A stretch of DNA of 64,000 nt. Origin: Heterodontus francisci (taxonomy: Eukaryota). Below the pieces are notes generated by a model. It was not told the origin of the DNA. It searched no databases and saw nothing but the letters and a program-made list of their open reading frames with translations. The DNA lies in NCBI RefSeq assembly GCF_036365525.1, contig NW_027140825.1:868001-932000 (forward strand), given 5' to 3'. The first letter of the stretch is position 1. Every line of letters starts with the position of its first letter. A program made the position numbers and the translations under genes. Shown one piece after another: positions 7,327 through 61,270 of the stretch.

Positions 7327-7365
7327 GGTTTTTGTCAAGGCGGCCAATGACTCTGAACCGCTGTG
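7327..7365 (-). promoter_or_regulatory. 23-RSS (CACAGCG-23-ACAAAAACC)
   Basis: Heptamer 7359-7365, nonamer 7327-7335. Confidence 0.95.
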
Positions 7366-8944: not shown

Positions 8945-9470
8945 ATTCGTTCATGGGACGTGAATTTCTTTTGCAAGACCAGCAATTATTTGCCCTTGAG
9001 AAGGTGGTGATGAGCTGCCTTTTTGAAACACTGCAGTCCATGTGGGGGAGGTACACCCACAGTGCTGTTAGGAAGGGAGTCCCAGGATTTTGACCCAGTG
9101 ACAGTGAAGAAACGGCAATATAGTTCCAAGTCAGGATGGTGTGTTGCTTGGAGGGGAACTTGCAGGTGGTGGTGTTCCCATGAGTCTACTGCCCTTGTCC
9201 TTCTGGTGGTAGAGTTGGTGGGCTTGGAAGGTGCTGTCTAAGGACACTCGATGCTTTGCTGCAGTGCATCTTGTAGATGGTATACACTGCTGCCACTGTG
9301 GTGCAGGGAGTGAGTGTTGAAGGTGGTAGGTGGGGTACTGAACAAGCGGGCTGCTTTGTCCTGGATGGTGTTGAGCTTCCTGAGTGTTGTTGGAGCTGCA
9401 TCATCCAGGCAAGTGGAGAGTATTCCATCACACTCCTGACTTGTACCTTGTAGATGATTGATACTCTGTA
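8945..9470 (-). mobile_element. CR1/L2-clade LINE 3' fragment
   Basis: IYKVQVRSVMEYSPLAWM motif; same family as 46400-47345. Confidence 0.8.
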
Positions 9471-9494
9471 CATCGCTTCACAATGGTGATGTAA

Positions 9495-9640
9495 ACTATC
9501 TGTCTTATTTAGATCATTAATTAACCTTTTAATTAATCAAGTATAGGACAGAGACTGTGACTCAGTTTTAACATACTCAGTGCCAGAAATTAAACAGTGT
9601 GGACGAGGACTTTGAAATTTTGCAGGGGATCTGAGACACA
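9495..9640 (-). pseudogene. Orphan, decayed V leader exon plus intron start of the HQWP family (V exon missing)
   Basis: CTGGCACTGA|GTATGTTAAAA...TTAATGATCT aligns with the leader/intron at 1820-1960 and 7980-8120; no ATG; a LINE lies where the V exon should be. Confidence 0.6.
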
Positions 9641-9820
9641 TCTCTCTCTTTCCTTCTCTCTCTCTTCCTCGGACCTTCTGCTATTCCCTGTCATTCAGCC
9701 CATGATGAAGGTTCAGGAATCCGGGAATCACCAGCTTGGAAAACGGCCGGTGAGGCAGGGAGAGACATTAACCATTGTCACTGCTCCTGTATGTCTGTCA
9801 GTTGTGTTGTTCACCCTGTT

Positions 9821-10580
9821 GGTTTTTGTACTGGCATTAAGGCAGTCTGCAGCGCTGCACCTCCTCCTCAAATCTTCCTTCGTAAATGGGTGAGCTTCCA
9901 GTGTAAGAATGACCCATTAGGGTGAGTCCCTGACCGGCATACTGCCGATACCACAGCATAATGCTCTTTCTACTGTCATTCCGGGAACAGTTTAATTCTG
10001 CTGGTTCACTTCCATTCACCACCACCAGAGTTGGCCACTGGTGCATCACCTCTGCTAGAGTTTTGCCTTGAGACATAAGGAGAATAGTTTAAAATGTTTA
10101 GAACATATTGTGACATATGATAACCAACTATAACTATCCAAACAGATAAGTAGATAACACTGGATAACTATATCGGCGGACAATATATAGTTAAATGATA
10201 TATTTGTAGATATATAGATAATAAACAGATAGATATAGAGATTGAAAAATAATGTAGCAAGTGACATGAGAGAGACAAATTAACCCAGAATTGGGGCAAA
10301 CTTATCGGTTAAAGATAGCTGTAGTAGCGTCACGAATATATAAATAACTTTCATTCAGTCAAAAATTTCATTAAGCCAATATTATTTACAGTGAAAGTAA
10401 AGTATGTAGTTTAAGAAATGGCAGAAAATCGACTGCAATTATGTTTTATCAATCTAGTTTGATAGAAGTTAGTAGTGAATGAAAACACAGCAAGTATTTT
10501 AGCACAGGTATCTTTATGAACAATGAATACCTACATGGAAGAAGAGAACAGACGATTAGGAAGAGTTTGACTAACTGCAT
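9821..10580 (-). pseudogene. TRBV: TCR V pseudogene with FR3 deleted up to the heptamer; leader 10535-10580, V remnant 9860-10066, damaged RSS 9821-9859
   Basis: Leader MQLVKLFLIVCSLLP T|GTAGGT; V KTLAEVMHQWP..ELNC..MLWYRQ..YEGRFEEEV then directly TGCAGCG-23-ACAAAAACC; no YYC. Confidence 0.85.
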
Positions 10581-11527
10581 CCTGCAGACTGGGGGCTGAA
10601 TCTGTTCATGAATCAATATCAGGCGGCTGAAGATAAAGCAGAGAGCGGAAATGACAGCGCTGGAAACAGGGTTTCCTTCTGACCCCTCACTTCTGGGTAT
10701 GACAGAATAATAACACCCACTGGTCGGAAGGAGCTTGAATAAGGAACTGCTTCCCGTCTGCATCAGGCTGTCGTTGCTTGTGTCTGATTGGTGTTGTGTA
10801 GGGTAGCTCTTTCGAACAGCCGGGCCAGGCTCGATGGGCTGAATGGCCTCGGCTCTGCTGTCGGATTCTATAAATATATAAGACACATCAAGTTGCTTGT
10901 TTGTATTCGGCAGATCAAAAGTTATTTCCCCTGTGCTAAACGACAATTCAAGGGTTATGTTTTACATTGGGGTGAAATCTTAGATACTTTGAAAAGAGAC
11001 AGTGTCATGAAGAAGTGGGTTAACTGTTTTGAACAGATGCTCAAACCGCCGTCAGGAGGCAGGTGTTCCAGTGAGAGACCTATCTGGGGAGGTGTCTCAC
11101 TTTTGCATTGTGTGAGTCATTGGGGACATGTACAACAGGGAGCTATGTGTAACTCTTGTCACATACCACCGACAGCTCATTCAACAGGACCATGAACCCA
11201 TTTACCCCACCTCGGAATCTGTTCTTTGCAGGTGGAGGCTGCCTTAACGAGAAGGATCTGAGCACATTGCTGCAGCATTTTTAATAATTCATAATGTATT
11301 GATGTACTCTGAGTCGAAGGAGAGCAAGAGGATCAAACTATCAGTAAAATACAAATCATGATATATCAATAATTAAACTGGTATGGTGTAAATAATGGTG
11401 TTAGATAGATGATAAACGTCAGATATATGGTGGATGGATATTTAGAGAGGTGAGAGACAGAGAGATAAATCGATGGCAAATATATATATATGATCGAGAT
11501 AAATCGATAGATAAATGGTGCAATATA

Positions 11528-11663
11528 NNNNNNNNNNNNNNNNNNNNNNNNNNNNNNNNNNNNNNNNNNNNNNNNNNNNNNNNNNNNNNNNNNNNNNNNN
11601 NNNNNNNNNNNNNNNNNNNNNNNNNNNNNNNNNNNNNNNNNNNNNNNNNNNNNNNNNNNNNNN
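11528..11663. other. Assembly gap (N run) within GATA/AGAT microsatellite
   Basis: 136 N flanked by agat/gata-rich sequence. Confidence 1.
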
Positions 11664-11745
11664 CTCGCAGATAATCCGAGAGACAGAAAGACACTGAGAT
11701 AGACAGACAGGTTTATCTCCCACAAGTGCTTTCCTCCCCCTTCAG

Positions 11746-11984
11746 AGTTTTTGCTGAACTCCGGCGCCTTTATGAGTCACTGTGCAGTCTCCAGACACAG
11801 TAATACACGGCTGATTGATTCGCCAAAAGGCTGGAGGAGTCCAGGTAAAAATGGGTGTTGTTGGGTCTCCTGGCGGTGTGGGGTCACACAGGGAAAGAGC
11901 AGTGAGGATGACTGACATCTCTCAGTCCAGTTCCACCTTACCCTTTAACACCAGGAACACAACCAAGAGGTGAGACACAGTCAT
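11746..11984 (-). pseudogene. TRBV: TCR V pseudogene (CAWS-related family) with 5' two-thirds of V exon deleted; leader 11942-11984, FR3 remnant 11785-11876, intact RSS 11746-11784
   Basis: Leader MTVSHLLVVFLVLK G|GTAAGG; short intron fused to TARRPNNTHFYLDSSSLLANQSAVYYCVWRL; CACAGTG-23-GCAAAAACT. Confidence 0.85.
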
Positions 11985-13981: not shown

Positions 13982-14474
13982 ATGTATCTGTTACTGAGTC
14001 TCATGGTCTTATTTCAAAGTAAGGGATCTTTATCACCACCACCCCACACCCCCATTATTTGTGTTAACAGCTGTCTTTCTTATTTTCTTTCTCTCTATCT
14101 TTCTCTCCTTGTTTCATTCTTCACATCCCAGATTGTCCCTGTTCACTGACCTTCTTCTCTCCCGGTCTCTTCCCCCAGGCGCAATCTCAGCGAGGGTCCG
14201 CCAGGCTCCCACCGCCGTCTCCAGATTTCCTGGGGAGGGAGTGGGACTGGAGTGCCGTGTGGAGGGTGAGAGCAGCGGTTCCATGTTCTGGTACAGACAG
14301 GACCCGGGGAAGGAGCCGCGGCTGATGTTTTACTCCGCAGCTACACCAAGTGTGAACTCAGAGGGAACTGTGGAGGGTTTCACAGCCAAGCGACCGACTG
14401 GCTCCCACTTCAACCTGGAGTCCACCAGCCTGCGGGAGAATCATTCGGCCCTGTATTTCTGTGCCTGGAGTCAG
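13982..14474 (+). CDS. TRBV: TCR beta V segment, apparently functional, TRBV30-like (CAWS); leader 13982-14018, V exon 14179-14474
   Basis: Leader MYLLLSLMVLFQ A|GTAAGG; V RVRQAP..VGLECRVEGESSGSMFWYRQDPGKEPRLMFYS..FTAKRPTGSHFNLES..SALYFCAWS; open frame. Confidence 0.93.
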
Positions 14475-14513
14475 CACAGTGACTCAGAGAGACGGAGCAG
14501 TTCAACAAAAACA
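14475..14513 (+). promoter_or_regulatory. 23-RSS (CACAGTG-23-ACAAAAACA)
   Basis: Consensus heptamer, 23-bp spacer, near-consensus nonamer. Confidence 0.95.
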
Positions 14514-18082: not shown

Positions 18083-18403
18083 ATGGTTCTCCAGTCCCCG
18101 GCGGCCAACGCCCTGGTTCCTGGGGAGGAAACCACGTTCCACAGCAGAATTGGGCAGGGCAACATGACTGAGTGTTGTTTGGACTGGTACTTGCAGATTG
18201 GTGACTGCCTGGGATGGATCAGATGGAGTGCACTTTCTGCATCTAACAACAGGAAATGGATTGAAACCCAGCACGAGACTCAGGCCAACACTTTCCCTCT
18301 GTCGTTGAAAAGCTCCTGGGTCCAAGACAACAGCGCTTACTACTGCAGGGCTCACAAGGATACACACAGTGTAACTAGAATGGAAGGAAACAGGGCAAAA
18401 ACT
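18083..18403 (+). pseudogene. TRBV: TCR V pseudogene (xAH family), V 18083-18364 plus RSS 18365-18403
   Basis: MVLQSP..TTFHSRIG (Cys23->Ser)..DWYLQ..WI..NTFPLSLK..D..AYYCRAHKD; in-frame TAG immediately 5'; CACAGTG-23-GCAAAAACT. Confidence 0.82.
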
Positions 18404-28261: not shown

Positions 28262-28827
28262 TGCCAGGATTTCTCATTTTCCTCTGTCAGGCCTTGAATG
28301 AGTTGGATTATCCAGGGTGGAAGCACAGACCAGAATAGAATGGAGTAGCACAAGGTTTGGGGAATGCTGGGCAGTCCCACCACGTACAGTCACATCCCTT
28401 CTGATCTCAGCCCTCAGCAATCATTTAACAGTGAGTGTTCCCTCCCTGAACAAAAAAACACTGGATTTCCATGATCAGATGGGAAAGTCATTCCAGCAAA
28501 ATCAATAATCTTCTTGAGACTGTCAGGTTTAGCGTTCATAGATATATTGAGCAGACAGAGAATGCAATAAAACTTTAAACACACAGTTTACAATCAGATT
28601 TACAATCACACTGGGTGGTCAGGGAGTCAAACACGTTAAAAGGCCTTTCCATGCTGCAGCACTCCTTGTTTGAATGTCCATCAATGGAAGATACACAGCC
28701 ATGTTCACTTATTGCAGACGTTTTACATTGTTACACTAGAGAGTTGTGACCAATGAGTCATTTCACAACAGTTCAACAGACTGGTCAGGATGTTAATATT
28801 GGGAAATTGGAGAGGAGCAGGGAGTCA
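28262..28827 (-). repeat. Right arm of inverted duplication of 18964-20065 (internal ~540 bp missing)
   Basis: Reverse-complement match. Confidence 0.9.
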
Positions 28828-28829
28828 GT

Positions 28830-29350
28830 GAATGGCAATAGTTCCAGGGGTTATGGGTGAACAGGGTTCGGAGTGAGTTAAGACACAGGCAGCAAATGTT
28901 TGTATGAGGATCTGATCAGGAAGTGTGAAGGATGTGCGGTTGGCCAGGAGAGTATAGGTATCGTCCAGTCTGGAGGTAACAGAGGCACTGATGAGGGTTC
29001 CAGCAGCAGATGAGCTGAAGCAGGGGCGGAGTCGAGAGATGGTGTGGAGGTGGAAATGGACAGTCTTGGTGATGGTGTGGATATGTGGTCGAAAACTCAT
29101 CTCGGGGTCAAACACAACAACAAAGGCTGAAAACTGTCTTGATCAGTTTCAGACAGGTACCAGAGATGGTGTCGGTGGTCCAAGAATGACATTTGTGTCG
29201 GGGACCACAGACAATGGCTTCAGTCTTCCCAATATTTAGTAGGAGAAAATAACTGCTCATCCAGTATTGGATGTTAGACAAGCAGTGTGGCAGAGCAGAG
29301 ACAATGGAAGCATTCACAGAGGTGTTATTGAGATGGAGTGTTGTCAGCAT
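28830..29350 (-). mobile_element. L2-like LINE fragment
   Basis: CLSNIQYWMS..FLLLNIGKTEAIV and FDPEMSF..HI..ITK...FHL..ISRLR motifs. Confidence 0.8.
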
Positions 29351-29974
29351 TAGGTTCCTGAGCTCAGTATAACTCCCTTAATTTGTTATTAAACATTTGA
29401 CATATGCCACACATAAATGCTTTGTACTCAATGAAAGCTTTCCTTTTCAATATATTTTGATTCTGCAAAGTTCAGCATCAACCAATCCCCCATTCTGCAT
29501 GAACCCTCAATTTAAAAGATGTTATCTACCCTGAGGTTCTCCATGGACAAGGACGAACTGTTTTCCTTGCCTCTGTTCTCAGTACTGACAGCTCCATGAA
29601 GCTGAGGGACCTCTACTCAATGGTAGATCTTTAAAGAAACTCCCTCATTAAACCTGAGATCACTTCATCCTGAAAGTGGCCAGAGCTGTCAGGTTAGTCT
29701 GGGTTCAGCTGACCAGTGGTCACTGTATACAAATGGGATCGTACTTCTCTATTTAACAAAGCAATAGCTTAAAGCTCCCACACCCTTGCGGTATAAAGAC
29801 ACACCAATTACAGTATAACATTAGCATACTTCTAGTCGGAGATTAACCCTTTGCTGACAATTTCCTTGAGTTAAACAAGGTGAAGATAAGATGGTACAGT
29901 GATTGAGTGAGGATGTAAAACACACAGAGACTGGATCACACGTGTCGGGTGCTTGTTGACATGTCCAAACACCT

Positions 29975-32900
29975 TCACACTTCCACAGGCTCACAAGCCG
30001 AGCACTGAACGTCTTCTGGATCCAATTCGAGCTTCGTGTGTGGACACTGATCCTGGAACATGTGCTTCATCTGCATCGCAGAGAGGAGAAACGATGAGTA
30101 TTACTGCAAGGGGAGGAGTGAATAGAAATAGACAGAGAGCATACAGACAGAGATCGGGAGAGAGGGTGGGGACAAGACAGTGAGAGACAGGGTGAGGCAA
30201 AGATACTCAGATAGAGGGAGAGATGCAGAGGGAGGGTGGGAGAGCTACAGGGATTGTGACAGAGGTAGAGAAACAGAGAGCGTGAGAGCGAGAGGTCGTC
30301 AGAGATGCAGTGAGGGAGAGACAGACACAGACAGAAAGAAAGACAAAGAAAGAGAAATACAGAGTGGGTGAGCGAGGCAGAGAAAGAGACAGAGATAGAA
30401 AGGACATAAAGAGAGAATGGGGAGAGTGAGAGGGAAGATCAGAGAGAGGTTACCGTACAACGAGGAGGCCATTCATCCCCTCTAGTCTGTTACACAGGAA
30501 CAGGAGGAGGCCATTCAGCCCCTCGTTCGAGTTATTACACAGGAACAGGAGAAGGCCATTCAGCCCCCTCACCCCCTCTCCAGCCTTTCACACAGGCTCA
30601 GGAGGAAGCCCATTCAACCCCTCACAAGCCTGATCTGGGGGACCAGAAGATAAGCAGAGGGGGAATTAGAGCTGTTTAAATAATGACCTGGAGTTCCCAT
30701 TCAGTGAATACAGACAGTGAGAGGGAGGATCTGTTGCCGCCCGTGTTTCTCCTCAGTCCAGTGCAGTCTCTCACCCTCTCCACAACGATTCTCTTTGCAG
30801 TTTCATCATCCAGATCAGTCATTGAAGTGATCTTCACATTAATCCTCTTGTATTTGGTATCTAAACACAACAGTCACAACATCAACAGGTTGAACACACC
30901 CATAGTTTAGCACAGGGCACGGGACGTATTTCGAATGATCTCTCCTCTCTAATTTAAACTCTCTTTCCTCCAGTTTGTCAACCACTCGTTTGTTCATCTG
31001 TCTCTGTTATTCTCTCTATCTCAACTCGTCTTGTCTCTAATCTGCCCTCCCTGTGTTATCATCCTCTATCCTGCACTCTCTTCTCTGTTGCCTCTTGTTC
31101 CATCTCCCAAGATCATTTGCATTCCGTGTTTACTCCGGTCTCACTGCCCTTTTCTCTGTCTCTGTCGATCACTCTCACTCTCTCTCTCTCTCTGATGCTC
31201 TCTGTCCCTCTGACAAAGACAAAGACAGAGAGACAGACAAAGAGCATCTGTGAGAGAGACACAGAAAGAGAAAGTGAGAGTCAGAGAGACAGACAGGGAG
31301 ACAGAACATCAGAGAGAGTGGGAGACAGAGTGAAGTGAAAGAGGGAGCTGGAGAAACTGAGAGCCAGATAGGAGAGAGGCGGTTACAGAAATGAAATATA
31401 TTTATATATGCGTGTGAAAGGCAGATAAAGGAGAAACAGAGAGACAGAGATAAAACTGAGAGTTACAGAGAGAGGGATGTGAGATAGAAGCTCAAAGATA
31501 TTTCTGAAGGAATTTCTGAACGTTTACGTTTCTGTGTTTCCCAATGTATCCACTCATACTGAACACAAGTGACTGCAACTCTTGTCTGACAGCACAGACA
31601 AGGCAGAGAGAGAGAGTGAGAACGATGGGTTTTCCTACACAGAACGATCACACAGCTGTTTGGAGGCCCTCGGTCCTGATATATTTGTGCCAGACTGAGA
31701 CAGCAGGAGCGATTTAATATTCCTGAAATGTGGAGGATCTGAAACGTTCCCACCGTCATCAGAAACAGGCTGGGAGTCGGGAGGTTCCTCGGGAGTAGAC
31801 GGAATCCCCGAGTCTGAGAGGATCAAATAAAGACAAGAGGAATTTCACTGGGATTCAGAACGCTGGATGAGTGGACAGAAGTGTTTCAACACAGAACCTC
31901 CTCTCGGATGTAATCTAACTCCCTCGACACACTGAATCAATGTATACCAGCCTTAACTGAGGGGGGACACAAGATATCATCGGCTGCAGAATCAGTTACT
32001 ACTCCGACAAGGAAAGAAAATGAACGGAGAAAACTCAGGAGATTATCAAAGTGATCAGCGAAACGACAGGGGGAAAGTGGAGTCAGAGAACAACAGAGAG
32101 CAGGAGTGAGAGAAAAGGAGGGAAGGCGACAGGTGTGAGACAGAAAAGAGTAAGGGAGATCTGGAATGATTGTGAACAAGAGAGAGAAAAGAAAACAGCA
32201 CTGTAATGTTCCCCTTAATCAATACTGATACCCCTCCTCCTTTCCTTCCTCCCCTCTCTTTCCTGAACACCTTGTAGTCAGGAATATTCACTACCCAGTC
32301 CTGCCCCACTTAGAGCCAGGACTCTGTTATTGCCACAACATCATATTTCCACATGGCTATCTGCGCCTGCAGCTCAACAACCTTATTTACCACTGTCCAT
32401 GCATTCATATACACACACATTAAACTGAATTTACAGCTCATCACCTTTCCTCTTACACTGTCCCCGTCTCATACGATACTCTTATCGACTCCATTGTTAT
32501 CTGTCCCTCCTAATTCTCTGTGCATCTATGTTTTGCTCTCTAATAATGCTCAGACCACTGTTTTTCCTGATGTATATTAATGACATAGACTGGGGCGTAC
32601 AGGGCACACTTTCAAAATCTGCAGATGACACAAAACCTGGAAGTATTGTGAACTGTGAGGAGGTTATAGACAGGCTGGTGGGATGGGCAGACACTGGCAA
32701 ATGAAATTTATCACAGAGAATTGTGAAGTGATTCATTTTGGTCGGACGAACGAGAGGCAATATAAAATAAAGGATACAATTCTAAAGGAGATGCAGGGGC
32801 AGAGGGACCTGGGGGGACATGTGCACAAATCATTGAAGGTGGCAAGACAGGTCGAGAGAGCGGTCAATACTTAGGAAGGATGTTAAGGTATTCGAGAGGG

Positions 32901-35900
32901 TGCAGAGAAGATTTACCAGAATGGTTCCCGGGATGAGGGACGTCAGTGACATGAATAGATCGGAGAAGCTGGGGCTGTTCTCCCTGGAGAAGAGACGATT
33001 AAGACGAGATTTGAGCAAGATGTTCATAATCAAGAGGGAACTGGACAGAGTAGTCAGGGAAAAACTGTTCCTCTTGGTGGGAGGATCCAGAACGAGAGAG
33101 CAACGGTTTTAGGTGAGTGGTAAAAGTCACAACAGAGACAGGGAAACCTTTTCACACAGTGAGTGGTTAGGATCTGAAATGCACTGCATGAGAGTGTGCT
33201 GGAGGCAGGTTTAATTGAGGCTTTCAAAAGGGAATTGGATAATTGTCATGGCAGAAAAAATCTGCAGGGCGACAGGAAAATGGCAGGAGTGGGAGTAGGT
33301 GAGTTGCACTGCCAGAGAGCTGGCACGGTGAAGATGGGCTGAACAGAAACTTTCTGTGCCGTAACCAGTCTTTGATTCCATGATTCTGCGATGATAACCC
33401 CACAAAGCAGATACCTTAGCTTCTAGAGCCCGGTGGGTAGTGGATGAAACCTCAGTAGATTCTCTAGTCGATTGTTCCTCGGATTCCTGAGTTTGAGCAT
33501 CATGCTGCCCTCAGTCTCTATCACAGTCACCTCAGTCACTGCATTACACTCACCTCAGTCACTTTATCACATTCCCCTCAGTCACTGCATCACACTCCCC
33601 TCAGTCGTGTATCCCTCTCCCGTCAGTCGCTGTATCACACTCTCCTCAGTCGCTGTCTCGCACTCCCTTCAGCTCACTGTATCACAATCCCCTCAGTCAC
33701 TGCATTATATTCCCTTCAGTCACTGCATTCCACTCCCCTCAGACAGTGTCTCACACTCTACTCAGTCACTGTATCACACTCCCCCAGTCACTGTATCACA
33801 CACCCTTCAGTTCACCGTATCCCACTCCCCTCAGACAGTGTCTCACACTCCCCTCAGGCAGTGTATCACACTCCCCTCAGTCACTGTATCCCACTCCCCT
33901 CAGACAGTGTCTCACACTCCCCTCAGACACTGTAGCGCAGTCCCCTCAGTCACTGTATCACACTCCCTTCAGTCACTGTATCCCACTCCCCTCAGTCAGT
34001 GTATCACACTCCCCTCAGTCACTGCATCCCACACCCCTCAGTCACTGTACCACACTCCCTTCAGTCACTGTATCCCACTCCCCTCAGTCAGTGTATCACA
34101 CTCCCCTCCGTAACTGTATCACACTCCCCTCAGTCACTGTATCACACTCCCTGAGTGACTGTATCACACACCCCTCAGTCACTGTATCATGCTCCCCTCA
34201 GTCACTGTATCACACTCCCCTCACACACTGCATCACACTCCCCTCTGTCACTGTATCACACTTCCTCTGTCATTGTATCACACTACCCTCAGTCACTGTA
34301 TCACATCCCCCTCAGACTCTGTATCACACTACCCTCAGTCGCTGCATCACATCCCCTCAGTGACTGTATCATACTAACCTCAGACACTGTATCACACTCC
34401 CCTCAGTCACTGTATCACACTCCCTTCAGTCACTGTGTCCCACTCACCTCAGTCTCTGTATCACACTCCCCTCCGTAACTGTATCACACTCCCTGAGTCA
34501 CTGTATCACACTACCCTCAGTCGCTGCATCACACTACCCTCAGTCGCTGCATCACACTCCCCTCAGTGACTGCATCATACTACCCTCAGACACTGTATCA
34601 CACTCCCCTCAGTCACTGTATCACACTCCCTGAGTGACTGTATCACACCCCTCAGTCACTGTCTCATACTACCCTCAGACGCTGTATCCCACTCCCCTCA
34701 GTCACCTCATCCCACTCCTCTCAGTCTCTACATCTCACTCCCCTCGGTCACGGCATCCAACTCCCCTCAGTCTCTACATCGCACTCCCTTCAGTCTCTAC
34801 ATCCCATTCCCCTCATTCACGGCATCCAACTCCTCTCATTCACTACATCCCAATCCTCTCAGTCTCTCCATCCCACTCCTCTCAGTCACTGCATCCCTCT
34901 CCCCTCAATCAGTGCATCCCACTCCTCTCAGTCACTGCAACCCGCTCCCCTCAGCCACTGCATCCCACTCCTCTCAGGCACTGCATCCCACTCCTCTCAG
35001 GCACTGCATCCCACTCCCCTCAATCGTTGCATCCCACACCCCTCAATCAGTGCATTCCACTCCACTCAGTCTCTACATCCCACTTCCCACAATTACTGCA
35101 TCCCACTCCGCTCAATTACATCATCCCACTCCCCTCAGTCCTTTATAGCCACTCCAGGCGCTGCTTCACAAACCACTGACCACCTCCACGCGCGTATCCA
35201 CTGTCTCTCGAGATATGGACGCCCAAAAGAACTCCCCTCAGTCACTGCATCCCACTCCCCTCAGTCACTGCATCCCACTCCCCTCAATCACCACATCCCA
35301 CTCCCCTCAGTCACCCCATCCCACTCCCCTCAGCCACTGCATCCCACTCCTCTCAGTCACTGCATCCCACTCCCCTCAATCAGTGCATCCCACTCCCCTC
35401 AGTCATTGCATCCCACTCCCCTCAGTCACTGCATCCCACTCCCCTCAGTCACTGCATCCCACACCCCTCAATCAGTGCATTCCACTCCCCAGTCACTGCA
35501 TCCCAATCCCCTCAGCCTCTGCATCCCACTCCCTTCCGTCACTACATCCCACTCCCCTCAAGTACTGCATCCCACTGCCTTCAGTCCACTGCATCCCATT
35601 CCCCTCCGTCACTGCATCCCACTCCCCTCAGTCAGTGCATCCCACTCCTCTCAGTCACTACATCCCACTCCCCTCAGTCACTACATCCCACTCCCCTCAG
35701 TCTATGTATTCCACTCCCCTCAATTACATCATCCCACTCTCCTTAGTCACTCCATCCCAGTCCCCTCAGTCACCACATCCCTCTCCCCTCAGTCACCCCA
35801 TCCCACTCACCTCAGTCACTCCATCCCACTTCCCTCAGTCACCCCATCCCACTCCCCTCAGTCACTCCATCCAACTTCCCTCATTCACTCCCTTCCACTT

Positions 35901-38900
35901 CCCGCAGTCACTCCATCCCACTTCCCTCAGTAAGAGACTGGATGATCTCGAGGACTGATCTTCTATGGTGCAACATTGGGTGTGGAATCTGTTTCGAATG
36001 CACCCCACAAGGGGGATACCTGATGTTCCAGACACCGCTGGGGTAGACGATGATCCCCTAGTGGATTCTCGAGTTGTTTGTTCCTCGGGTTCCTCAGTTA
36101 CGACAGTCTCTGGATCTGTAATAAAGGAAGAGGGCAGAGTGGAGAAAACCCGAAGAGCTCGTTTATTTAGTTCTCTAGTCCAGACAGTGTCAGATTTTCA
36201 TCTTTATCAAACCCTCGAAGATCCTATCCAACTCCTCGTGAACATTGCTTCCTGGAGAGGGAGTGTGAGGTGCCCAGCACTGCAGTGGGGACCTGACGTG
36301 AGCCATGAACACTGCAGGGATCAGAGTGCCTGATAGACAGAGACAGCAGAGTCTGGTTCAGTTCCCTAGAGTTTCAGTGAAGTACACTTTGTGTTTCAGA
36401 TCCTTTATTCACTGTGTCCCTGACAATAAGGAGGGGAGTGAGTAAACCGTCTCATTTCTGTGGGTGACACGGGACATCCCAGAATCACCCTCTGGATGAT
36501 ATAGAAGCATCAATGTACCTGTACAATACGCAGCGCAATAAAACAAGGACTTCAACTCATAAACGAAGTAACTGCTGCAGTTTTTGATCTTTATCTCATG
36601 GACCTTGTCGCAGTGTTTTCTACCCCAGGATAAACAAACTGTCCGTGTTACTTCCCCCTGTCCCACGCTGGGATGGGAACCTGAAATGAGAGTTTATAAA
36701 TATTGAAGACTGTAACCCATGTGAACAGTGCTGTACAGTGAATGTAAATCTGATATTCTCAAGGCTGAAATTACCATTTAACCAGCCTGTAACATGTGTG
36801 GAGCAGTGAAAATCTGGGACAGCAGTCTCCGGAATCTTCCATCCACCAGAACTGAAACAAAGATTACAGAGTCAGTCCCTGAACTGATGGCAAATATTAA
36901 CTGTTAGAGAGACTGGTACCAGCAGATAGTACCAGAAACTGGGGGAAATCCCTTACTCTGCCCATATTGACTAGATTACCCTGAAATTGTTCCTTTACAT
37001 TACCTTTTAAATCTGTACCATCCTTGAGCAAGATTATCATCACACTTCTCCTGACCGGAGCACCCAGTGACATCACAATCGCTGCTCCTCCAGGGCTGGT
37101 CCAGGACTGTGTGATTTACACACGGGTCAGTGAGTGCAGAGTCTGTGACTGAGTGACAGAAAGATGTTTAATGTTAATATGTGACCTTACATCAGAACTG
37201 GGAAAAGTTCTAGTGACAAGTGAAACCGGGGAGAATGTGATGATAAATGGAAGGGATCACACTCCCCTCAGTTACCGTATCACACTCTCCTCAGTCACTG
37301 TACCCCACTCCCCTCAGTCACTGATTCACACTCCCCACAGTCACTGATTCACACTCCCCTGAGTCACTGCATGCCACTCCCCTCAGTCACTACACCCACT
37401 TCCCTCAATTACAGCATCCCACTCCCCTCACTCACTGCACCCACTCCCCTCAGTCAGTGCACCCACTCCCATCAGTCGCTACATCCCACTCCCCACAGTC
37501 ACTACATCCCACTCCCCTCAGTCACTACATCTCACTGCCCTCAGTCACTGCATCCCTCTCCCCTTAGTCGCTGCATCCCACTCCCCTCAATTACTGCATC
37601 CCACTCCCCTCAATCACTGCATCCCACTTCTCTATGTCACTGTACCCACTCCACCGAATCACTCTATACCATTCCCTTCAGTCACTGCACCTCACTCCCC
37701 GCTTCTCTACATCCTACTCCCCTCAGTTACCACATCACACTTAGTAGTCACTACATCCCACTTCCCTCAATTACAGCATCCCACTCCCCTTAGTCACTAC
37801 ATCCCACTCCCGTCAGTCACTGTATCCCACTCCCCTCAGTCTCTGTATCCCACTCCCCTCAGTCGCTACTTCCCACTCCCCTGTCACTACACCCCACTCT
37901 CCTCAGTCACTACACCCCACTCTCCTCAGTCACTACATCCCACTCCCCTCAGTCACTACATCCCACTCCCCTCAGTCACTACATCCCACTCCCCACATTC
38001 ACTGTATCCTACTCCACCTAGTCACCGCATCTCATTCGCTCAGTCACTGTATCCCACTCCCCTCAGTCTCTGTATCCCACTCCCCTCAGTCGCTACTTCC
38101 CACTCCGCTCAATCACTGCATCCCACACCCCTCAGTCACTACCTCCCACTCCCCTGTCACTCCACCCCACTCCCCTCAGTCACTACATCCCACTCCCCAC
38201 ATTCACTGTATCCTACTCCACCTAGTCACCGCATCTCATTCGCTCAGTCACTACATCCCACTCCCCTCAGTCTCTGCAGACCACTCCTCTCAGTCACTGC
38301 AGCCCACTGCTTACCGAGCTAGCCGTGTCCTAAAAGACAAAGCTGCTAGTCTGGGACTGCGGTAGGTGATGACAGAACCAAAAAGAGGAGAAAATATACT
38401 TGACTTCATCCTCACCAATCTGCCTGCCACATATCCATCTGTCCATGACAGTCTTGGTGGGAGTGACCACCGCACAGTCCTTGTGGAGCCAAAGTCCCAC
38501 CTTCACATTGAGGATACCGTCCATCGTGTTGTGTGGCACTATCACCATGCTAAATGGGATAGATTCAAACAAGTCTAGCAATACAACAATGGGCATCCAT
38601 GAGGTGCTGTGGGAACAACAGCAGCAGCAGAATTGTACTCAACTACAATCTGTAACCTCATGGTCCGGTATATCCCCCAATCGATCATGACCATCAAGCC
38701 AGGAGACCAAACTTGGTTCCATGAAGAGTGCAGGAGGGCATGCAAAGTGCAGCACAAGGCATACCTCAAAATGAGGTGTCAGCCTGGTGAAGCTACAACA
38801 CAGGACTATCTGCATGCCAAACAGCATAATTAGCATGCGATGGACAGAGCTAAGCGATCCCATAACCAACGGATCAAATGAGTTCCGAAGAAGGGTCGCT

Positions 38901-41900
38901 GACCCGAAACGTTAACTTTGCTTCTCTTTCCACAGATGCTGCCAGACCCGCTGAGTGATTCCAGTATTTCTTGTCCTGCCACATCCAGTCGTGAATGGCA
39001 GAAGACAATTAAACAACTAACTGGAGGAGGTGGCCCCACAAATATCCCCATCCTCAATGATCAGGGAGCCCAGCACATCAGTGCAAAAGATAAGGCTGAA
39101 GCATTTGCAAAAATCTTCAGCCAGAAGTGCTGAGTTGATGATCCATCTCGGCCTTCTCCTGCAATCCCCAGCATCACAGATGTCAGTCTTCAGCCAATTC
39201 GATTCACTCCGCTTGATATCAAGAAATGACTGAAGGCACTGGATACTGCAAAGGCTATGGGCCCTGACAATATCCCGGAAGTAGTACTGAAGACCTGTGC
39301 TCCAGAACTTGTTGCATCCTTAGCCAAGCTGTTCCAGTACAGCTACAACACTGGCATCTACCCTGCAATGTGGAAAACTGCCCAGGCATGTCCTGTGCAT
39401 AAAAAGCAGGACAAGTCAAAGCAGGGCAAGTTCAAGCCACCCAATTACCGTCCCATCAGTCTACTCTCTATCATCAGTAAAATGATGGAAGGTGTCGTTG
39501 ACAGTGCTATCAAGCGGCACTTACTCAGCAATTACCTGTTCAGTGATGGTCAGTTTGGGTTCCGCCGGGGTCACTCAGCTCCTGACCTCATTACAGTGTG
39601 GTTCAAACATTGACAAAAGAGCTGAACTCAAGAGGTGAGGTGAGAGTGACTGCCCTTCACATAGAGTCTGTCAGGATCCTGCTGCTGTGTCTGACACTCA
39701 CCAGAAAACCTGAATCTCCTCAATTGCAGACCTGACAGAATACTACCCAGACATGCCAGCCCTCTCTCCAGACAGTGAGCGCATGTTTCAGTTCCCTAGA
39801 GTTTTAGTGAAGAGTTCACTCTGTTTTACAGATCCTTTATTCACTGTGTCCCTTACAAAAAGGAGGGCAGTGAGTAAACTGTCTCATTCCCATGGGTGAC
39901 ACGGGACATCCCAGAATCACCCATCTGCACCATATACAAACAGCAATCTACCTGTACAATAAGCAGCGTTACAGTCGGGTGGAGGCTTCAACTCATAAAC
40001 AAAATAACTGCTGCAGTTTTTGATCTTTATTTCCTGGGTCCAGTGACAGCGATTTCCAGCCTTGTTAAAACAAACTGTCCTCGTTACTTCCCCCTGTCCC
40101 ACACTGGGATGGGAACCTGAAATGAGAGTTTATGAATATTGAAGAAAGTAACCCACGTGAACAGTGCTGGACAGTGAATGTAAATCTGATATTTTAAAGA
40201 CGGAAATTACCCTGTAACCAGCCTGTGGCACGTGTGGAGCAGTGAAAATCTGGGACAACAGTGTCCGGAATCTTCCATCCACCAGAACTGAAACAATAAT
40301 CACAGAGTCAGTCCCTGAACTGATGGTAAATATTAACTGTTAGAGAGACTGGTAACAACAGATAGTGCCAGAAACTGGGGGAAATCCATTACTCCTCCCT
40401 CATTAACTGATTTACCCAGAATTTGTTCCTTTACATTACCTTTTAAATCTGTACCATCCTTGAGCAAGATTATCATCACACTTCTCCTGACCGGAGCCCA
40501 CAGTGACATTACAATCGATGCTCCTCCAGGGCTGGTCCAGGACTGTGTGATTTACACACGGGTCAGTGAGTGTGGAGTCTGTGACTGAGTGACAGAAAGA
40601 TGTTTAATGTTAATATAAAGTACAGTTAATGTTACACAGCGCCTTGTACCCTCCCGAAATACCAATAATCTCAGTTTCACCCTCCGCCCTGGGCAAAGCC
40701 CCGCAGATTAAAGATGGAAAATGTCCTCCTTCTCTAAACTGGGTTTCCATCTGTCTCCCAGCTCAGCCTCCCCCTCTAACTCACTGCTCACAGACAGTCC
40801 TCCCTATTCTAGATTAACCACCAGCTCTCAGGTAACAGAAAGCAGTAAATATCTCAGCTTCACTTCATCCCAGCAGGAAAGATGTAAAGTGGAGGAGGAG
40901 CGAGAACTGCCAGGTGGAGCACAAGCGACCCAGTGTGACTGGTGGGTCCTGCAGAGGGAACGTGTAGTCTCAAAACCAACAACAACCTGCGTTTATGTAC
41001 TGCCTTTGATGTAATAAAATGTCCCAAAGCACTTCATCGGTGTGTTACCATCCCGAACTGACACTGATCCACAGAAGCAGCTGGTCGGGCAGGTGGCCAA
41101 ATGCTATGTCAAATAGGTAGGTTTTAAGGAGTGTCTGAAAGGAGGAAAGAGAGGTGGAGAGACGGAGAAGTTGAGGGAGAGAATTCCATAGCGTTAAGCC
41201 TCGGCAGGTGAAGGCACAGCTGCCAATGGTGGAAGGGATTCGAATCGGGAATACTCAAGAGGCCTCAATTAGAGGAGCGCAGAGATCTCCGAGGGTTGTG
41301 GGGCTGGAGATGATTTCAGCGGTAGGGAACGGCGAGGTGATAGAAGGATCTGGAAACGATTGTGAGAATATTGAAATCCAGGCCTTGCTGAACCGGGAGC
41401 CAGTGTAGGTCAGTGAGCACGGAGATGAAAGGTGAACTGGACTTGGGCAGTATCATACTGGATGACCAAAATGTACAGAAGGTGGAATGTGAGAGATCAG
41501 CCAGGAGATCTTTGGAATAGTCAAGTCTAGAGGTACCAAAGTACTGCTAAAGGGTTTGAGCAGCAGAGAAGTTGCAAGAGCCAAGTCAGGAATACTGTTT
41601 CTGATCATCCTTCTCGAATTGTCGGCAGTCTTTGACACAATTCACCACACTATCCATCGCCAACACCTCTCCTTCCATGTCCAGCTGGGTGGAACTGCTC
41701 TGGCCTATTTCCACTCAACCCAGTCTAGTCTCAGCCAGAGAATCTCCTGCAGTGTCTTCCCTACCCACTCCAGCACTGCTACCTCTAGCGTACCCCGAGA
41801 ATCTATCTTGTCCCTCTCCAATTTCTCATCAGCTTCTGACTGTGCCCAGCTTCCTTCCCTGTCGCCTCCTCATCACAAGGACATCCAATTACAACCTCCG

Positions 41901-42549
41901 TAATATCCACCATCACAGATTTTGCCTCAGCCAATCCTCTACCAAAAACCCTCTACCTTCTGGAGAATCAAATCTTCTAATCCACTCCTGGCCAGCCTCC
42001 CAGCTTCCACTTTCCAGAAGTCAGGTCTCCTCCAACACACTGCTGTTGCATGTTATCTTGCAGAAAGTTTAAGTCATACATCAGCCCTGTGCTCTCTGAC
42101 CCACATTGGTTCACAGCTGCAAACGCCTTTGATGTACAACTTCCATCTTCCTGTTCAAATTCTTTCATGACCTCTCCCGCCCTCTCCCACCACATTTCTG
42201 TAATCTTCACCAACTCTCTGTTTCTCTGACCCAAGCCTCCTGTATAAATTCCCTCCACTCCCTTTCCTCCAGCAGTGTCTGATGTGGCTTCAAGATGTCT
42301 AGCCTCCTAAACCTTTCTGCCTCTCCACCTCCGTCTGCTCTTTTAAACTAACAGTCAGCCCTCCAATCATCTCCTTCCCTGCCGTGTGTCAGACATTTCT
42401 TCAATCAGATTTCTGTGGAACATCTTGGGAGATTTTTCTATGTAACGGTTTGAATAAACACAGCTTGTTCTAGTTGTACTGGGGGTGAACTTTGTCGAGA
42501 ATGAAAGTTACTCACTCAGGTAACCCAGAATGATCAGCCGAGTCCACAT
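29975..42549 (-). CDS. GP2/uromodulin-like secreted protein with two tandem D8C (D10C) domains and no ZP domain; ~398 aa; proposed coding exons 42516-42549, 40440-40584, 40211-40287, 39952-40116, 37004-37148, 36775-36851, 36519-36680, 36020-36115, 31948-32001, 31754-31813, 30775-30860, 29975-30070
   Basis: Hand-spliced GT/AG exons with compatible phases give MWTRLIILGYL-ITDSTLT-DPCVNHTVLDQPWRS..CDDNLAQGWYRFKSSGGWKIP..HCST..TGWL.GSHPSVGQGEVTRTVC...C....IKIKNCSSYFVYELK...C.AAYCT (x2), then stalk DPETVVTEEPEEQTTREST.., then DTKYKRINVKITSMTDLDDETAKRIVVERMKHMFQ..CSACEPVEV*. D8C exons are firm; the 3' exons are less certain. Confidence 0.78.
32560..33385 (+). mobile_element. CR1-like LINE fragment (intronic)
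   Basis: ADDTK..WQMKF...CEVIHFGR; QRRFTRMVPGM..LGLFSLEKRRLR. Confidence 0.85.
33415..33505 (-). pseudogene. Decayed duplicate of the stalk exon
   Basis: QESEEQSTRESTEVSSTT resembles EEPEEQTTRESTRGSSST (36020-36115); its 5' side abuts the minisatellite and its end is out of phase. Confidence 0.55.
33510..35930. repeat. ~23-bp minisatellite (CTCCCCTCAGTCACTGYATCMCA), ~2.4 kb
   Basis: Tandem units visible; source of the many spurious S/H/P-rich ORFs. Confidence 0.95.
36519..37148 (-). CDS. D8C domain 2 (three exons)
   Basis: Same exon sizes and phases (145/77/162 nt) and same motifs as domain 1. Confidence 0.9.
37258..38310. repeat. Second array of the ~23-bp minisatellite
   Basis: Same unit, in the intron between the two D8C domains. 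Confidence 0.95.
38320..39662 (+). mobile_element. CR1/L2-clade LINE ORF2 fragment (endonuclease end to RT start), interrupted at ~38880-38975 by a Penelope-like piece
   Basis: RGENILDFILTN..SDH; GPDNIP..LK.CAPEL..; NYRPISLLSIISK.ME; QFGFRRGHS. Confidence 0.9.
39952..40584 (-). CDS. D8C domain 1 (three exons)
   Basis: DPCVNHT..GWYRF / GGWKIPDT..C..GWLQG / HPSVGQGEVTRTVCF..CHW..IKIKNC..YFVYEL.PPPDCNAAYCT. Confidence 0.9.
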
Positions 42550-44079
42550 CTTACTGGTGAGATTCTGGAAAGGGAAACACAAGACAAACATTTGAGAGAG
42601 ATTACCGAGTCGGGAAATTGGAGGGAATATTAAATAGGGAGTTGCCGAGCAGTTCGTCAGTATATCTGTTTTAGAGAGGTGAGCTCCATCTAATTATCTC
42701 TCTCTCACTGGGGCTCTTACAGACAGAGGTGAGCTCAGCTACATGTTCTTGTTAAACATCAGGAACTTGACTCCAATCCTTCACCCTTTCCACTCTCCAA
42801 AGCTTTTATGAATAAACCACATGTGTTCCTGACTCTCTCCTCCAGGTCTGTCTCCTGCATCCCTGAAACAAACCTCTTTGAATTTCTGACAAAGGTTATT
42901 CAGGAAGATGGTGTTGTTTCAGGAGAAGCAGGACACACACCCCCTGGGTCAACACCGAGCAAGTGACAAACTCCTTTGCTTTTTCTAACAGTCCTCCCAT
43001 ACCCGACTGCTTACCAGAGTCTCCAATGGAGGTGTCACTGGGTGGGAGATGTTGTCGGTTCAGTTCCAGCTGCTTGCTCCTCAGTCTCGGGTCCACTCTG
43101 CTGTGAACAGTGTCAGTCTCAGTGTCAGCTCCAACTCCTATATACACCACGACGGATTGACTGCAGTGCTGGTTGGCTGAAATATTAACATTTAGTAATG
43201 ATGAATGACATTACATAATCTATGCAAACGAAGGCCTTTTGGTTAAAGTAGCTGCCATAATAAACCAAATTAATATTTCTCCTGGGACCATGCTAACCCA
43301 CGGGGATTTGCTGTTGTAACATAACTTGTCTTCAGTTACCCAACAGAGAGTGTGTAGGGAGATTGGAGCCTGGGGCTGGGACTCTGAATATTATAGATAG
43401 TATTTGCCAGTTGGCTGTGTATATTTGATCTTTCATAGGCATTAAGTATTAGGGAGAGAATATTCACAGGAGACATGCCTCTCTTATCAGTAGTGGGTCA
43501 GTATTGGGGGGATGATGAGAGGGGGCAGAGAAACAAGATGTTCCGGAGAGACAAATGATCGGACATCCATTTTCCTCCTTGAGGTCGTTGGGGTTAAAGT
43601 AAATGATTCTGTTTTTCAGAATATAGTCACAGAATGAGAACAATGAAATCCTCACATCAGCGACAGTGATACCATCTCCGAAATAGCACAGATACAGCGT
43701 TAGTAACACATACAAACCAGAATGAGGAGGACATAAATTTCTCAGTGAGAGAGTGTTTGAGTATTCAGGACATGGGATATTGTGAGGGGTCCCTGACCAA
43801 ATGTTAATGTCTCAGTCACTGAATGCTCCTCACCTGCTAACATTGGGATAGCAGTGGGCTTCAGGTATAAACTTCAGTACAAGAACCACCCAGGATGTTG
43901 ATTTATGGAAGCAAAAGTGTTGTATGTAAACTTTATAGAGTTACTGGCAGACCATTGTCCATGACTGACCGAATAATAATAAGCAGGTAATTTTTCCCAG
44001 ATATGGGTGGGATTAGTCTTTGATATGTTTGATTTTGACTGAAAGAATGAGGAGAGATGAAACAAAACAATTTGTGAAG

Positions 44080-47345: not shown

Positions 47346-47821
47346 ATGAGTTAAAAAACAGAAAATAACCTCAGCAGGGGAAAAACTCCAAAATAAAACA
47401 ACAACCTCAACGTAAAAAAAATTCAACAACTTAAGCAGGGAAGGAAACAAGAAGTACAACAAAAACCTCAGCAGGGAAAACACCAACAAAAACAACAACT
47501 ACCTCATCAGGAGAACAGCGCCAACAAATTCAACAACAGATCAGCAGGAGATTCAAACACCAACAAGTTCAACAACCTCAGTTGGAGAAAAACACCAGCA
47601 AATACAACAACAAATACAACAACAACTTCAAAATTATACCAACAAATGCAACAACAACTACTGGCAGCCAATGGGAGAGAGAGGGGCGTGGGTTTCCCAT
47701 CAGGGAGGGGGGTGTTGTGCAAACCTGAATCACTTGCTTGAATCTTCATGTGGCTTCTCACAAGACTCAACTCTCTTCTTTCCACTGATTTTCCAATTGC
47801 AGGATAAGCTTCCAGTGGAAG

Positions 47822-48050
47822 ATGCATCTGTTACTGAGTCTCATGGTCTTATTTCAAAATAATGTTTTACTCCCCAGCTGTACCAAGTGTGATTTCAGAG
47901 GGGACGGTGGGGTGTTTCAGCGCCAAGTGACCGACTGACGCCCAGTTCAACCTGGAGTCCTCCAGCCTGTGGGAGAATCACTCGGCCATGCATTGCTGTG
48001 CCTGGAGTCTGCACAGTGACTCAGAGAGATGGAGCAGTTCAACAAAAACA
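47822..48050 (+). pseudogene. TRBV: CAWS-family V pseudogene with intron and 5' half of V deleted; RSS 48012-48050 intact
   Basis: Leader ...TTTCAAA fused to ATGTTTTACTCC (MFYS); TGA in V frame; ends HCCAWSL then CACAGTG-23-ACAAAAACA. Confidence 0.85.
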
Positions 48051-59840: not shown

Positions 59841-60466
59841 ATGGCACTCTTAGCTAAAAACGTCTCAATCTTGGTTATCTTATTGCTTGGACATTGGATT
59901 TTTTGTAAGTGCTATCCCTTCAGCAGGTGGAAGTAGATTCAATAGTAATCTCCCAAATGGCTATTGGATCAGGGCTTGGAGCGGGGAAATTGGGAGGGCA
60001 ATGGGGTAGGACCGGGGGCAAGTGAGACTAACTCGATTGCTCTTTCAAACAGCCAGCGCAGAAACGATGGGCAGAACGGCCTCTTTCTATTCTGTTAGAT
60101 TTTATGATTTATGCTGCAATTTTCCTTCGATGAGTCTGAATTACTTTCTTTTATGGAATGTGTTCCAGGGGTTCAGTCTGCACCCACTGTGGTCCAGACT
60201 CCAGCAGCGGCATCTATTCGACCGGGGAAGCCCCTCGCCCTCGGCTGCAGCTTGGAGGGAGCCAGCATGGGCAGCTACATCATGCACTGGTACAGGCAGG
60301 AGGGGAAGGCAGTAAAGTGGATGTGCAATGAGCACGGCAGCTGTGGGCCAGGCTTTGAGAAGCGGTTCACTGTGCAACACGACGCTGCAAGCAACCGATT
60401 CTCCCTGCAGCTGGTCGACCCCCAGCCGACAGACACTGCGACCTACTACTGTGCAGCGAGTATGGG
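59841..60466 (+). CDS. TCR V segment, apparently functional; leader 59841-59904, V exon 60169-60466; Vdelta2-like signature and two extra Cys around CDR2
   Basis: Leader MALLAKNVSILVILLLGHWIF T|GTAAGT; V APTVVQTP..LGCSLEGASMGSYIMHWYRQ..WMCNEHGSCGPGFEKRF..NRFSLQL..DTATYYCAASM. Confidence 0.9.
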
Positions 60467-60505
60467 CACGGCGATACAACCCTGCGGCAGAGTGAGACAA
60501 AAACG
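60467..60505 (+). promoter_or_regulatory. 23-RSS (CACGGCG-23-ACAAAAACG)
   Basis: CAC retained, 23-bp spacer, near-consensus nonamer. Confidence 0.88.
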
Positions 60506-60654
60506 TCCTCACCCTCCCAACCTGCCCCTAAAACACCCACCTGTGAGCAGCATCATCGTGAAAGCTCAGCAAACCAACGAGCCCCTGTGTATCCCTATTG
60601 GTGACCTTTGCAACACCATTTCATCTGAAAACACTTTACAGCCAGTTAGCCAGA

Positions 60655-61270
60655 AAGTCATACAGCCTGTATGGTACAGAAGGAGGCCATTCTGCCCATC
60701 GAGTCCATGCAATCCAGTCAGTCCCATTCTACCTCTCTATCCCTGCGGCCCAGCAAGATTATCTCCTTCAAGTGTCCAATCAATTTCCTTTTGAAATCAT
60801 TCATTGTCTCCACTTCCACCACCCTGGTAGGCAGTGAATTCCCGGTTATTACCACTCACTGTGTATAGAGGTTCTTCCTCAAATACCCCAGTATCTATTG
60901 TCCAAAATCATCAATCTGTGACCAATATTCCTTGCACCATCCACTAATGGGAGCAGGTTTACTCTGTCTACCTTAACTAACACTGTCACAATCTTGTTTC
61001 CTCTATCAGATCTCCCCTCAATCGCCTTTGCACCAAGGTAAACAACCCCAGATTCTCCAAAATAACCATGTAACATCCCTGGAACCATTCTGGTAAAATC
61101 TCCTTTGCACCCTGTCATGGACACTCACATCCTTCCTAAAGTGTGGTGACCAGAACTGAACGCAAACTTCCAGTTACAGCCTAACCAGAGCTTTGGAAAG
61201 GTTCATCATAGCTTCCCAGCGCTTGTGCTCCATGCCTCCATTTATAAAGCCCAAGAACCCGAGTGCTTTA
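60655..61270 (-). mobile_element. CR1-like LINE 3' fragment
   Basis: FTRMVPGM motif and CR1 3' UTR-type sequence. Confidence 0.75.

Follow-up and report, generated by a model that had tools for sequence, protein, structure and literature searches.

The stretch of DNA analysed here, 64,000 nt of Heterodontus francisci (contig NW_027140825.1, positions 868,001 to 932,000; the window), carries on its minus strand, from 42549 to 29975, a gene for a protein with two D10C domains (D8C in Pfam), the domain of GP2 and uromodulin (UMOD). The gene is in all probability an intact copy of an elasmobranch family whose members combine a signal peptide, D10C heads, an acidic stalk and a tail of ~55 residues and have no EGF or ZP module, no transmembrane (TM) segment and no glycosylphosphatidylinositol (GPI) anchor. 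Its product is most likely a secreted glycoprotein of 360 amino acids encoded by ten exons, and its position within an array of T-cell receptor (TCR) V segments probably reflects co-amplification. In the D10C proteins studied to date (UMOD, GP2 and the omcins) a ZP polymer or an anchor in the membrane displays the heads. The shark proteins instead have a short mucin-like stalk that bears one or two heads and a small tail; they are probably released in soluble form, and their many copies across sharks and rays provide a natural test of the D10C head alone. The family has already been predicted by automatic annotation; what is new is an unstudied architecture within a known domain superfamily. 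A search of the literature on D8C, uromodulin-like or GP2 proteins in sharks found no study of this family, and uromodulin, GP2, D8C, Heterodontus and trypsin are all unmentioned in PMC12227049. For genome annotation, the live exons of this copy can now be told apart from its relic exons.

Gene model and transcripts

The coding sequence begins with the ATG at 42549-42547 and ends with the TGA at 29977-29975. The best model contains ten coding exons (E1, A1-3, B1-3, the stalk, tail 1 and tail 2), which together comprise 1083 nt and encode 360 amino acids, and an exon-by-exon reading finds canonical GT-AG sites at every junction. Residue by residue, the model is collinear with the NCBI Heterodontus francisci prediction XP_067883778.1 (360 aa; hereafter P0166), which was reached through a region search with the tail as the query. 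Eight substitutions separate the two proteins: L4R, D37N, N93Q, I118K, E135N, V137A, A274V and S355C. Relative to this annotated twin, S355C (position 29995) gives the present copy an extra tail cysteine, and D37N (40474) creates an N-x-T sequon (IDCNVT) in head A, within its variable loop. In whole-protein searches and folding the joined exons of the window were represented by two proxies, P0166, which is 97.8% identical, and the paralogue P0010. The parts of the gene are as follows.

42516-42549, minus strand: exon 1, with the ATG and the start of the signal peptide (MWTRLIILGYL) and a phase-1 donor GTGAGT; collinear with the N-termini of P0166 and P0010
39952-40584, minus strand: D10C cassette A, exons 40584-40440, 40287-40211 and 40116-39952 in phases 1-2, 2-1 and 1-1; nine cysteines and an NHT sequon after DPC
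36519-37148, minus strand: D10C cassette B, exons 37148-37004, 36851-36775 and 36680-36519; ten cysteines and an NHT sequon
36020-36115, minus strand: stalk exon, 96 nt, phase 1-1, acidic and rich in Ser/Thr (DPETVVTEEPEEQTTRESTRGSSSTPAVSGTS)
30775-30860, minus strand: tail exon 1 (TKYKRINVKITSMTDLDDETAKRIVVER), with the RNA joint 30775/30070 in X1 and X2
29975-30070, minus strand: tail exon 2, ending in the TGA at 29977-29975 (MKHMFQDQCPHTKLELDPEDVQCSACEPVEV), with RNA spliced on at 30070
29300-29974, minus strand: 3' untranslated region (3'UTR), at least 675 nt; the RNA contigs (X1, X2) extend further

The open frames of the minus strand include two near-identical sets of three D8C-type exons. 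Each three-exon cassette is in phase 1 at both ends, and tandem duplication of such a symmetric unit therefore preserves the reading frame. The duplicated blocks, 39784-40616 and 36354-37180, are 88% identical over 835 bp, and the two heads most likely arose from tandem duplication of one cassette.

RNA contigs from four runs, three on a single sample of organism A and one on organism B, were aligned to the minisatellite-free interval 29300-33507. The contigs are spliced, and the runs therefore contain RNA. They join 30070 to 30775, and this joint (CT..AC on the plus strand and hence GT..AG on the minus) coincides exactly with the tail junction of the model; in X1 it lies in a 324-nt contig at a depth of 85 with one mismatch, and the same joint is present in X2. 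With 558 and 772 bases aligned, contigs follow the window collinearly across the tail exon and the stop codon and extend past 29300; no exon is spliced behind the last coding exon, which is thus the terminal one. The sequence-only reading had proposed an RNA check of the last exon; this bore the model out, the terminal junction being exact to the base and the transcripts not being joined to a ZP or TM exon. A minor donor at 30688 (X2, depth 6, two mismatches) would insert 29 in-frame residues between the tail exons and is possibly derived from a paralogue.

Twelve phase-compatible exons had previously been proposed between 42549 and 29975. These limits are exact; the count was too high, and ten live exons give the best model, with the ninth of the proposed exons being a relic and the tenth being optional.

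33415-33509, minus strand: relic stalk-repeat exon (ninth in the earlier numbering), 95 nt, with a weak acceptor and a frameshift and stop relative to the paralogue
31754-31813, minus strand: optional cassette exon (tenth in the earlier numbering), 60 nt, phase 1-1, with good splice sites (SGIPSTPEEPPDSQPVSDD)

As a live exon, 33509-33415 is ruled out by the combination of its acceptor, which is purine-rich and abuts a minisatellite, its length of 95 nt instead of 96, the stop codon that it contains in the frame of the paralogue (tblastn of P0010), its donors, since splice enumeration brings it into phase only via weak GTTA-type sites, and the RNA contigs, which diverge on both of its sides (at 33495 and 33435) into paralogue sequence. 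The upstream loose end of these contigs, taken as the reverse complement, reads GSGSSEPVTS, the stalk-repeat junction of the paralogues. The optional exon 31813-31754 encodes a peptide that is identical to that of an exon used in the paralogues P0010 and P0167 and skipped in the twin P0166; no RNA contig on 29300-33507 covers it. In the earlier numbering, E8-E10-E11 and E8-E11 are both in frame and yield 380 or 360 amino acids, respectively.

The D10C heads, the stalk and the tail

The presence of two D8C/D10C domains, claimed from the sequence alone, is upheld at three levels. Pfam D8C_UMOD (PF23283) matches the single third exons of cassette A (E = 4e-9) and cassette B (E = 2.9e-5), and in the twin P0166, as in P0010, D8C is the only Pfam match at E values of up to 10; in P0166 it covers two stretches (E = 5.2e-21). 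A phmmer search of the PDB sequences with P0010 aligns the whole three-exon module with human GP2 (7p6r; E = 2.5e-30) and with UMOD (E of about 3e-29). The AlphaFold2 model of P0166, calculated from a 40-sequence alignment, has a mean predicted local distance difference test (pLDDT) score of 82.7, and both heads are modelled with confidence. In a Foldseek comparison the heads of this model, which represents the twin of 97.8% identity, superimpose on 7p6r and 7p6s, crystal structures of the GP2 decoy module, with target template-modelling scores of 0.82-0.86 and root-mean-square deviations of 1.4-1.5 over 124-131 alignment columns of 38-40% identity.

The decoy module of GP2 and UMOD is bipartite, with a disulfide-stabilized beta-hairpin packed against the D10C domain (PMC8930769). 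The shark heads share with these proteins (7p6r, 7p6s and 7pfp) the D10C fold, the WYRF and GWL.G.HP motifs, the YCTDP module end and the cysteines of the C1-C8, C2-C9, C4-C10 and C5-C7 pairs. The sequon at the position of GP2 N65 is also kept in both heads (DPCVNHT, compared with DPCQNYT in GP2). In contrast to GP2 and UMOD, the canonical set of ten cysteines (C1-C8, C2-C9, C3-C6, C4-C10 and C5-C7) is incomplete: in the alignment of GP2 and the modules, C3 and one of C6/C7 are missing, such that the C3-C6 pair is absent, and an extra cysteine pair, one member of which is lost in head A, is present in the long loop before C2. The hairpin half is also missing. The first cysteine follows the signal peptide after only about nine residues (TDSTLT precedes DPC), and a linker of only seven (VTDSALT) joins head A to head B; these spacers leave no beta-hairpin and contain no Cx-Cy pair. 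The shark protein further differs from GP2 and UMOD in having an acidic stalk and a small tail in place of EGF IV, ZP-N/ZP-C, the GPI anchor and the polymer. Membership of the D10C superfamily thus holds at the level of the domain. Membership of the class in which a decoy module is carried on a ZP filament fails on the hairpin, EGF IV, ZP and the anchor, and the earlier equation of the heads with the GP2/UMOD decoy module has to be given up for the lack of the hairpin half and the C3-C6 disulfide.

The remaining parts of the protein were recognized correctly from the sequence: a signal peptide (starting in exon 42549-42516), an acidic Ser/Thr stalk (36115-36020) and a short C-terminal domain (30860-30775 and 30070-29975). 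The N-terminus, MWTRLIILGYLITDSTLTDPC, fits the pattern M[WRK]T.L[IL]IL..L followed by DPC on comparison with P0010, P0166, P0059, P0058 and P0013. The only hydrophobic 19-residue window of P0166 lies within residues 1-22, and the last 25 residues are hydrophilic (mean hydropathy -0.75), with no GPI-type or otherwise hydrophobic C-terminus; the protein therefore has neither a TM segment nor a GPI signal. No EGF or ZP match was returned by Pfam for P0166 or P0010 at E values of up to 10. Together with the terminal exon of the RNA contigs, these results confirm the absence of ZP-N/ZP-C, a TM segment and a GPI tail.

The stalk of P0166 contains 13 Ser/Thr and seven Asp/Glu among 32 residues, is modelled with a pLDDT below 50 and is probably O-glycosylated; paralogues have one to several such 96-nt phase 1-1 stalk repeats. 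The conserved tail of ~55 residues (YKRINVKITS, a helix and two cysteines) ends the protein. In the AlphaFold2 model it shows one helix (residues 319-337) with a pLDDT of 67-84. A phmmer search with the tail matches P0010, P0079, P0078, P0059, P0016 (from a skate) and P0126, and the tail has no Pfam match (E values of up to 10), no fold match and no meaningful look-alike in the ESM Atlas. Prediction of a homodimer from two copies of the P0166 tail (residues 300-360) scored 0.05, which speaks neither for nor against self-association.

A phmmer search with the third exon of cassette A returned 1354 D8C proteins, the closest of which are H. francisci predictions. Among the 125 nearest D8C representatives (up to 800 aa), D8C is found in 123, ZP-N in three and ZP-C in two. 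In larger relatives, D8C repeats occur alongside CUB, SRCR or adhesion-GPCR modules or without any other domain. The repeats number up to 11-17 per protein in corals and a loach. Tandem D8C domains without ZP are therefore common in the databases, as the three ZP-N matches among the 125 nearest representatives illustrate; it is the head-stalk-tail plan that sets this family apart. This plan is found in seven shark genera (Heterodontus, Carcharodon, Mustelus, Pristiophorus, Chiloscyllium, Hemiscyllium and Scyliorhinus). The tail is also present in a Leucoraja (skate) member, and a relative with five D8C domains occurs in Hypanus (stingray). Gnomon predictions from elasmobranchs, such as XP_067883778.1 (360 aa) and XP_067884563.1 (472 aa), have the same architecture and exon plan; they are named 'uncharacterized protein' in H. 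francisci and 'uromodulin-like', 'GP2-like' or 'OIT3-like' in other elasmobranchs. The exact protein of the window has no match in a collection of 15 billion proteins, and P0166 is alone in its 90% cluster.

Outside mammals, the closest relatives to have been studied are the teleost omcins, in which five D10C domains precede EGF IV, a ZP module and a GPI anchor (the last by prediction). The omcins are described as teleost-specific and form a 400-kb cluster on chromosome 12, where a TCR V array is not reported (PMC11415648). The shark proteins resemble the omcins in their tandem D10C heads and in belonging to a clustered, rapidly duplicating gene family, and differ from them in lacking EGF IV, the ZP module and the GPI anchor and in being set among TCR V segments.

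Between the two heads of the present copy, the introns are ~90% identical, the first cassette exons 96% and the third 84%, with an overall ratio of nonsynonymous to synonymous substitution rates (dN/dS) of 0.5. Among six H. francisci modules the differences fall into four patches, namely the loop before C2 and the regions around C4, around C6/C7 and before C9, and the framework between them is almost invariant. This patchy variation fits variable surface loops, and positive selection is not proven by it; the differences between copies would be confined to four surface-loop patches. The third exons (39952-40116 and 36519-36680) are less alike than their flanking introns, with the changes in two short patches that also vary among other H. 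francisci copies.

Setting among V segments and alternative readings

The gene lies antisense in a gap of 29.6 kb between V segments bearing recombination signal sequences (RSS) at 18365 and 48012, close to the V-free block of ~28 kb described before. That a gene of secretory type is embedded among TCR-type V segments holds, as V segments with a 23-bp-spacer RSS (RSS-23) stand on both sides. Nine RSS-23 (heptamer, 23-bp spacer and nonamer) immediately follow Y.C motifs; five belong to the plus strand (14475, 18365, 48012, 53161 and 57237) and four to the minus strand (11784, 7365, 3010 and 1205). A tenth pattern match, RSS-12-like at 33324, falls in an intron of the D10C gene and has no V. Pfam V-set matches four of the V open frames. 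The nearest neighbours of the gene are as follows.

18083-18403, plus strand: nearest V-like segment on the low-coordinate side, ending ...AYYCRAHKDT, RSS-23 from 18365; an open frame with no Pfam V-set match
47720-48050, plus strand: nearest V-like segment on the high-coordinate side, ending ...AMHCCAWSL, RSS-23 from 48012; probably a pseudogene of the CAWS family

The V segment at 14184-14477 (...LYFCAWSQ) scores 49 bits with V-beta and 32 bits with V-alpha of the mouse single-chain TCR 3tf7_C, and 37 bits with Ig kappa; the chain type is thus based on a single PDB comparison. By this comparison the family of this V appears beta-like, as does the neighbour at 48012 from its similar V end (...HCCAWSL). 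Searches of protein databases for homologues with two V exons gave no matches, and no D, J or C segments were found in the 64,000-nt window. Removal or inversion of the gene in T cells by V-to-DJ joining, as previously suggested, follows only if the array is a working, rearranging T-cell receptor beta (TRB) locus.

Mammalian TRB loci contain interspersed trypsinogen genes. The shark gene resembles these in being a non-TCR gene for a secretory protein that sits inside, and was probably amplified together with, an array of V-beta or, in the shark, apparently beta-like segments; the protein families are unrelated, and the analogy is one of context only. This would be the second case, after the trypsinogens, of a secretory-protein gene family riding in a TCR V array, and the simplest explanation of its position would be a trypsinogen-like co-amplification with V duplicons.

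Several observations weigh against reading this copy as an intact gene for a secreted glycoprotein. The cysteine count of head A (nine) is odd. Exon 1 and the A-to-B and stalk-to-tail junctions rest on homology with Gnomon models. At 29995, the sole coding difference within 29300-33507, all of the contigs encode Ser, the letter of P0166, where the window encodes Cys, and in the 3'UTR the contigs depart from the window at 10-11 positions, which lie in 29370-29786. Because of the letter at 29995 and the 3'UTR differences, the transcripts detected are assigned to a sister copy or allele of 98-99.7% identity; such transcripts bear out the gene plan without proving transcription of this copy, which is presumed. 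It might accordingly be proposed that this copy is a silent or decaying duplicate and that its sister copies alone are expressed. In favour of this are the foreign letters at all of the diagnostic sites that the contigs cover, the lack of a database match to the exact protein together with the single-member cluster of P0166, and the relic exon, large intronic minisatellites and extra tail cysteine of this copy. We nevertheless consider it improbable: the frame is complete over ten exons, all of the splice sites are canonical and only eight substitutions separate the product from an annotated protein. Moreover, contigs drop rare variants, so that letters missing from them are no evidence, and the RNA may derive from another individual or haplotype.

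The function of the heads and the meaning of their location invite other readings. As had been suggested from the sequence alone, the protein could be divalent and soluble and serve as a decoy for bacterial adhesins that bind mannose, such as those of the FimH type, acting as GP2 and UMOD do but without the filament. The match of the heads to the FimH-binding module of GP2 agrees with this, as does the N-x-T sequon at the N65 position in both of them: in GP2, N65 carries oligomannose and the N65A mutation abolishes FimH binding (PMC8930769). The teleost relatives also point in this direction, since omcins (zebrafish zgc153932/omc5) protect against E. coli, an experimentally established role in defence (PMC11415648), but they carry the ZP module and GPI anchor that the shark protein lacks. 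In UMOD, the architecture of hairpin and D10C has been suggested to help to keep the FimH-binding glycan at N275 high-mannose (PMC8930769). As the groove-forming hairpin and the C3-C6 disulfide are missing from the shark heads, a FimH-type decoy function is a guess; with an avidity of only two in the absence of a polymer, the decoy reading is doubtful. Less likely again is the idea that the position in the V array is itself functional, with the gene being co-regulated with or removed by V(D)J recombination, or with array turnover being exploited to diversify a family of innate receptors. The antisense placement between RSS-23 V segments, one of which tested as V-beta-like, and the patchy variation of the head loops are compatible with it, but passenger duplication of the gene accounts for this pattern too, the dN/dS of 0.5 between heads A and B does not exceed 1, and D, J and C segments are lacking in the window. 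Most speculative, and slightly less probable still, is the combined proposal that the soluble D10C proteins of elasmobranchs, as a large and rapidly duplicating family with variable loop patches, constitute a germline-diversified mucosal recognition or decoy system, that its interleaving with V-beta-like segments is no accident, that the dynamics of the array drive its diversification and that its genes are lost or inverted on rearranged chromosomes.

We therefore retain the reading of an intact, co-amplified family member. Its product would be released as a soluble, non-polymerizing protein of mucus or secretions, and its D10C heads may display N-glycans or attach to ligands on the surface of microbes or epithelia. 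The protein may have a role in defence.

Repeats, V cassettes and minor features

Further features of the gene region are as follows.

42630-42636, minus strand: candidate TATA-like element TATTTAA, 87 nt upstream of the ATG; a pattern match only
33508-35931, no strand assigned: intronic 23-bp minisatellite of ~105 copies, lying between the stalk and relic exons
37256-38308, no strand assigned: intronic 23-bp minisatellite of ~46 copies, between cassettes A and B
38330-39700, plus strand: retroelement fragment in the A-B intron, with a weak reverse-transcriptase match

The match of the retroelement fragment to Pfam RVT_1 (39257-39613; E = 3.9e-6) reaches 27.1 bits, which is under the cut-off of 29.6. 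Neither AATAAA nor ATTAAA occurs in the 1.67 kb that follow the stop codon (28300-29974), despite a 3'UTR of more than 675 nt in the contigs. The minisatellite arrays at 33508-35931 and 37256-38308 share the same 23-bp unit; their plus strand is strongly C-rich, with a GC skew of -0.65. Each array is intronic and lies directly behind one D10C cassette region, and the longer of the two adjoins the stalk-repeat exon, the 5' end of which it has apparently eroded.

Repeated V cassettes are observed at 13.6-18.6, 47.4-51.7 and 52.2-57.3 kb, each comprising a CAWS-type V and a YYC(R/G)AH-type V some 3.9-4.1 kb apart. The RSS of the first and third of these cassettes are those at 14475/18365 and 53161/57237, and in the cassette at 48012 only the RSS of the first V was found. 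The cassettes are flanked by the same low-complexity repeats, and the array therefore appears to have grown by duplication of a two-V unit. V orientation switches between ~11.8 and 14.2 kb, from the minus strand (1105-11784) to the plus strand (14475-60791). The minus-strand V segments end in ...YFCAA or ...YYCAA, with the exception of that at 11784 (...YYCVWRL), and look unlike the plus-strand CAWS family. Runs of N are present in the window at 8346-8615 and 11528-11663. PDB searches place the V segment at 60108-60791 closest to antibody VH domains.

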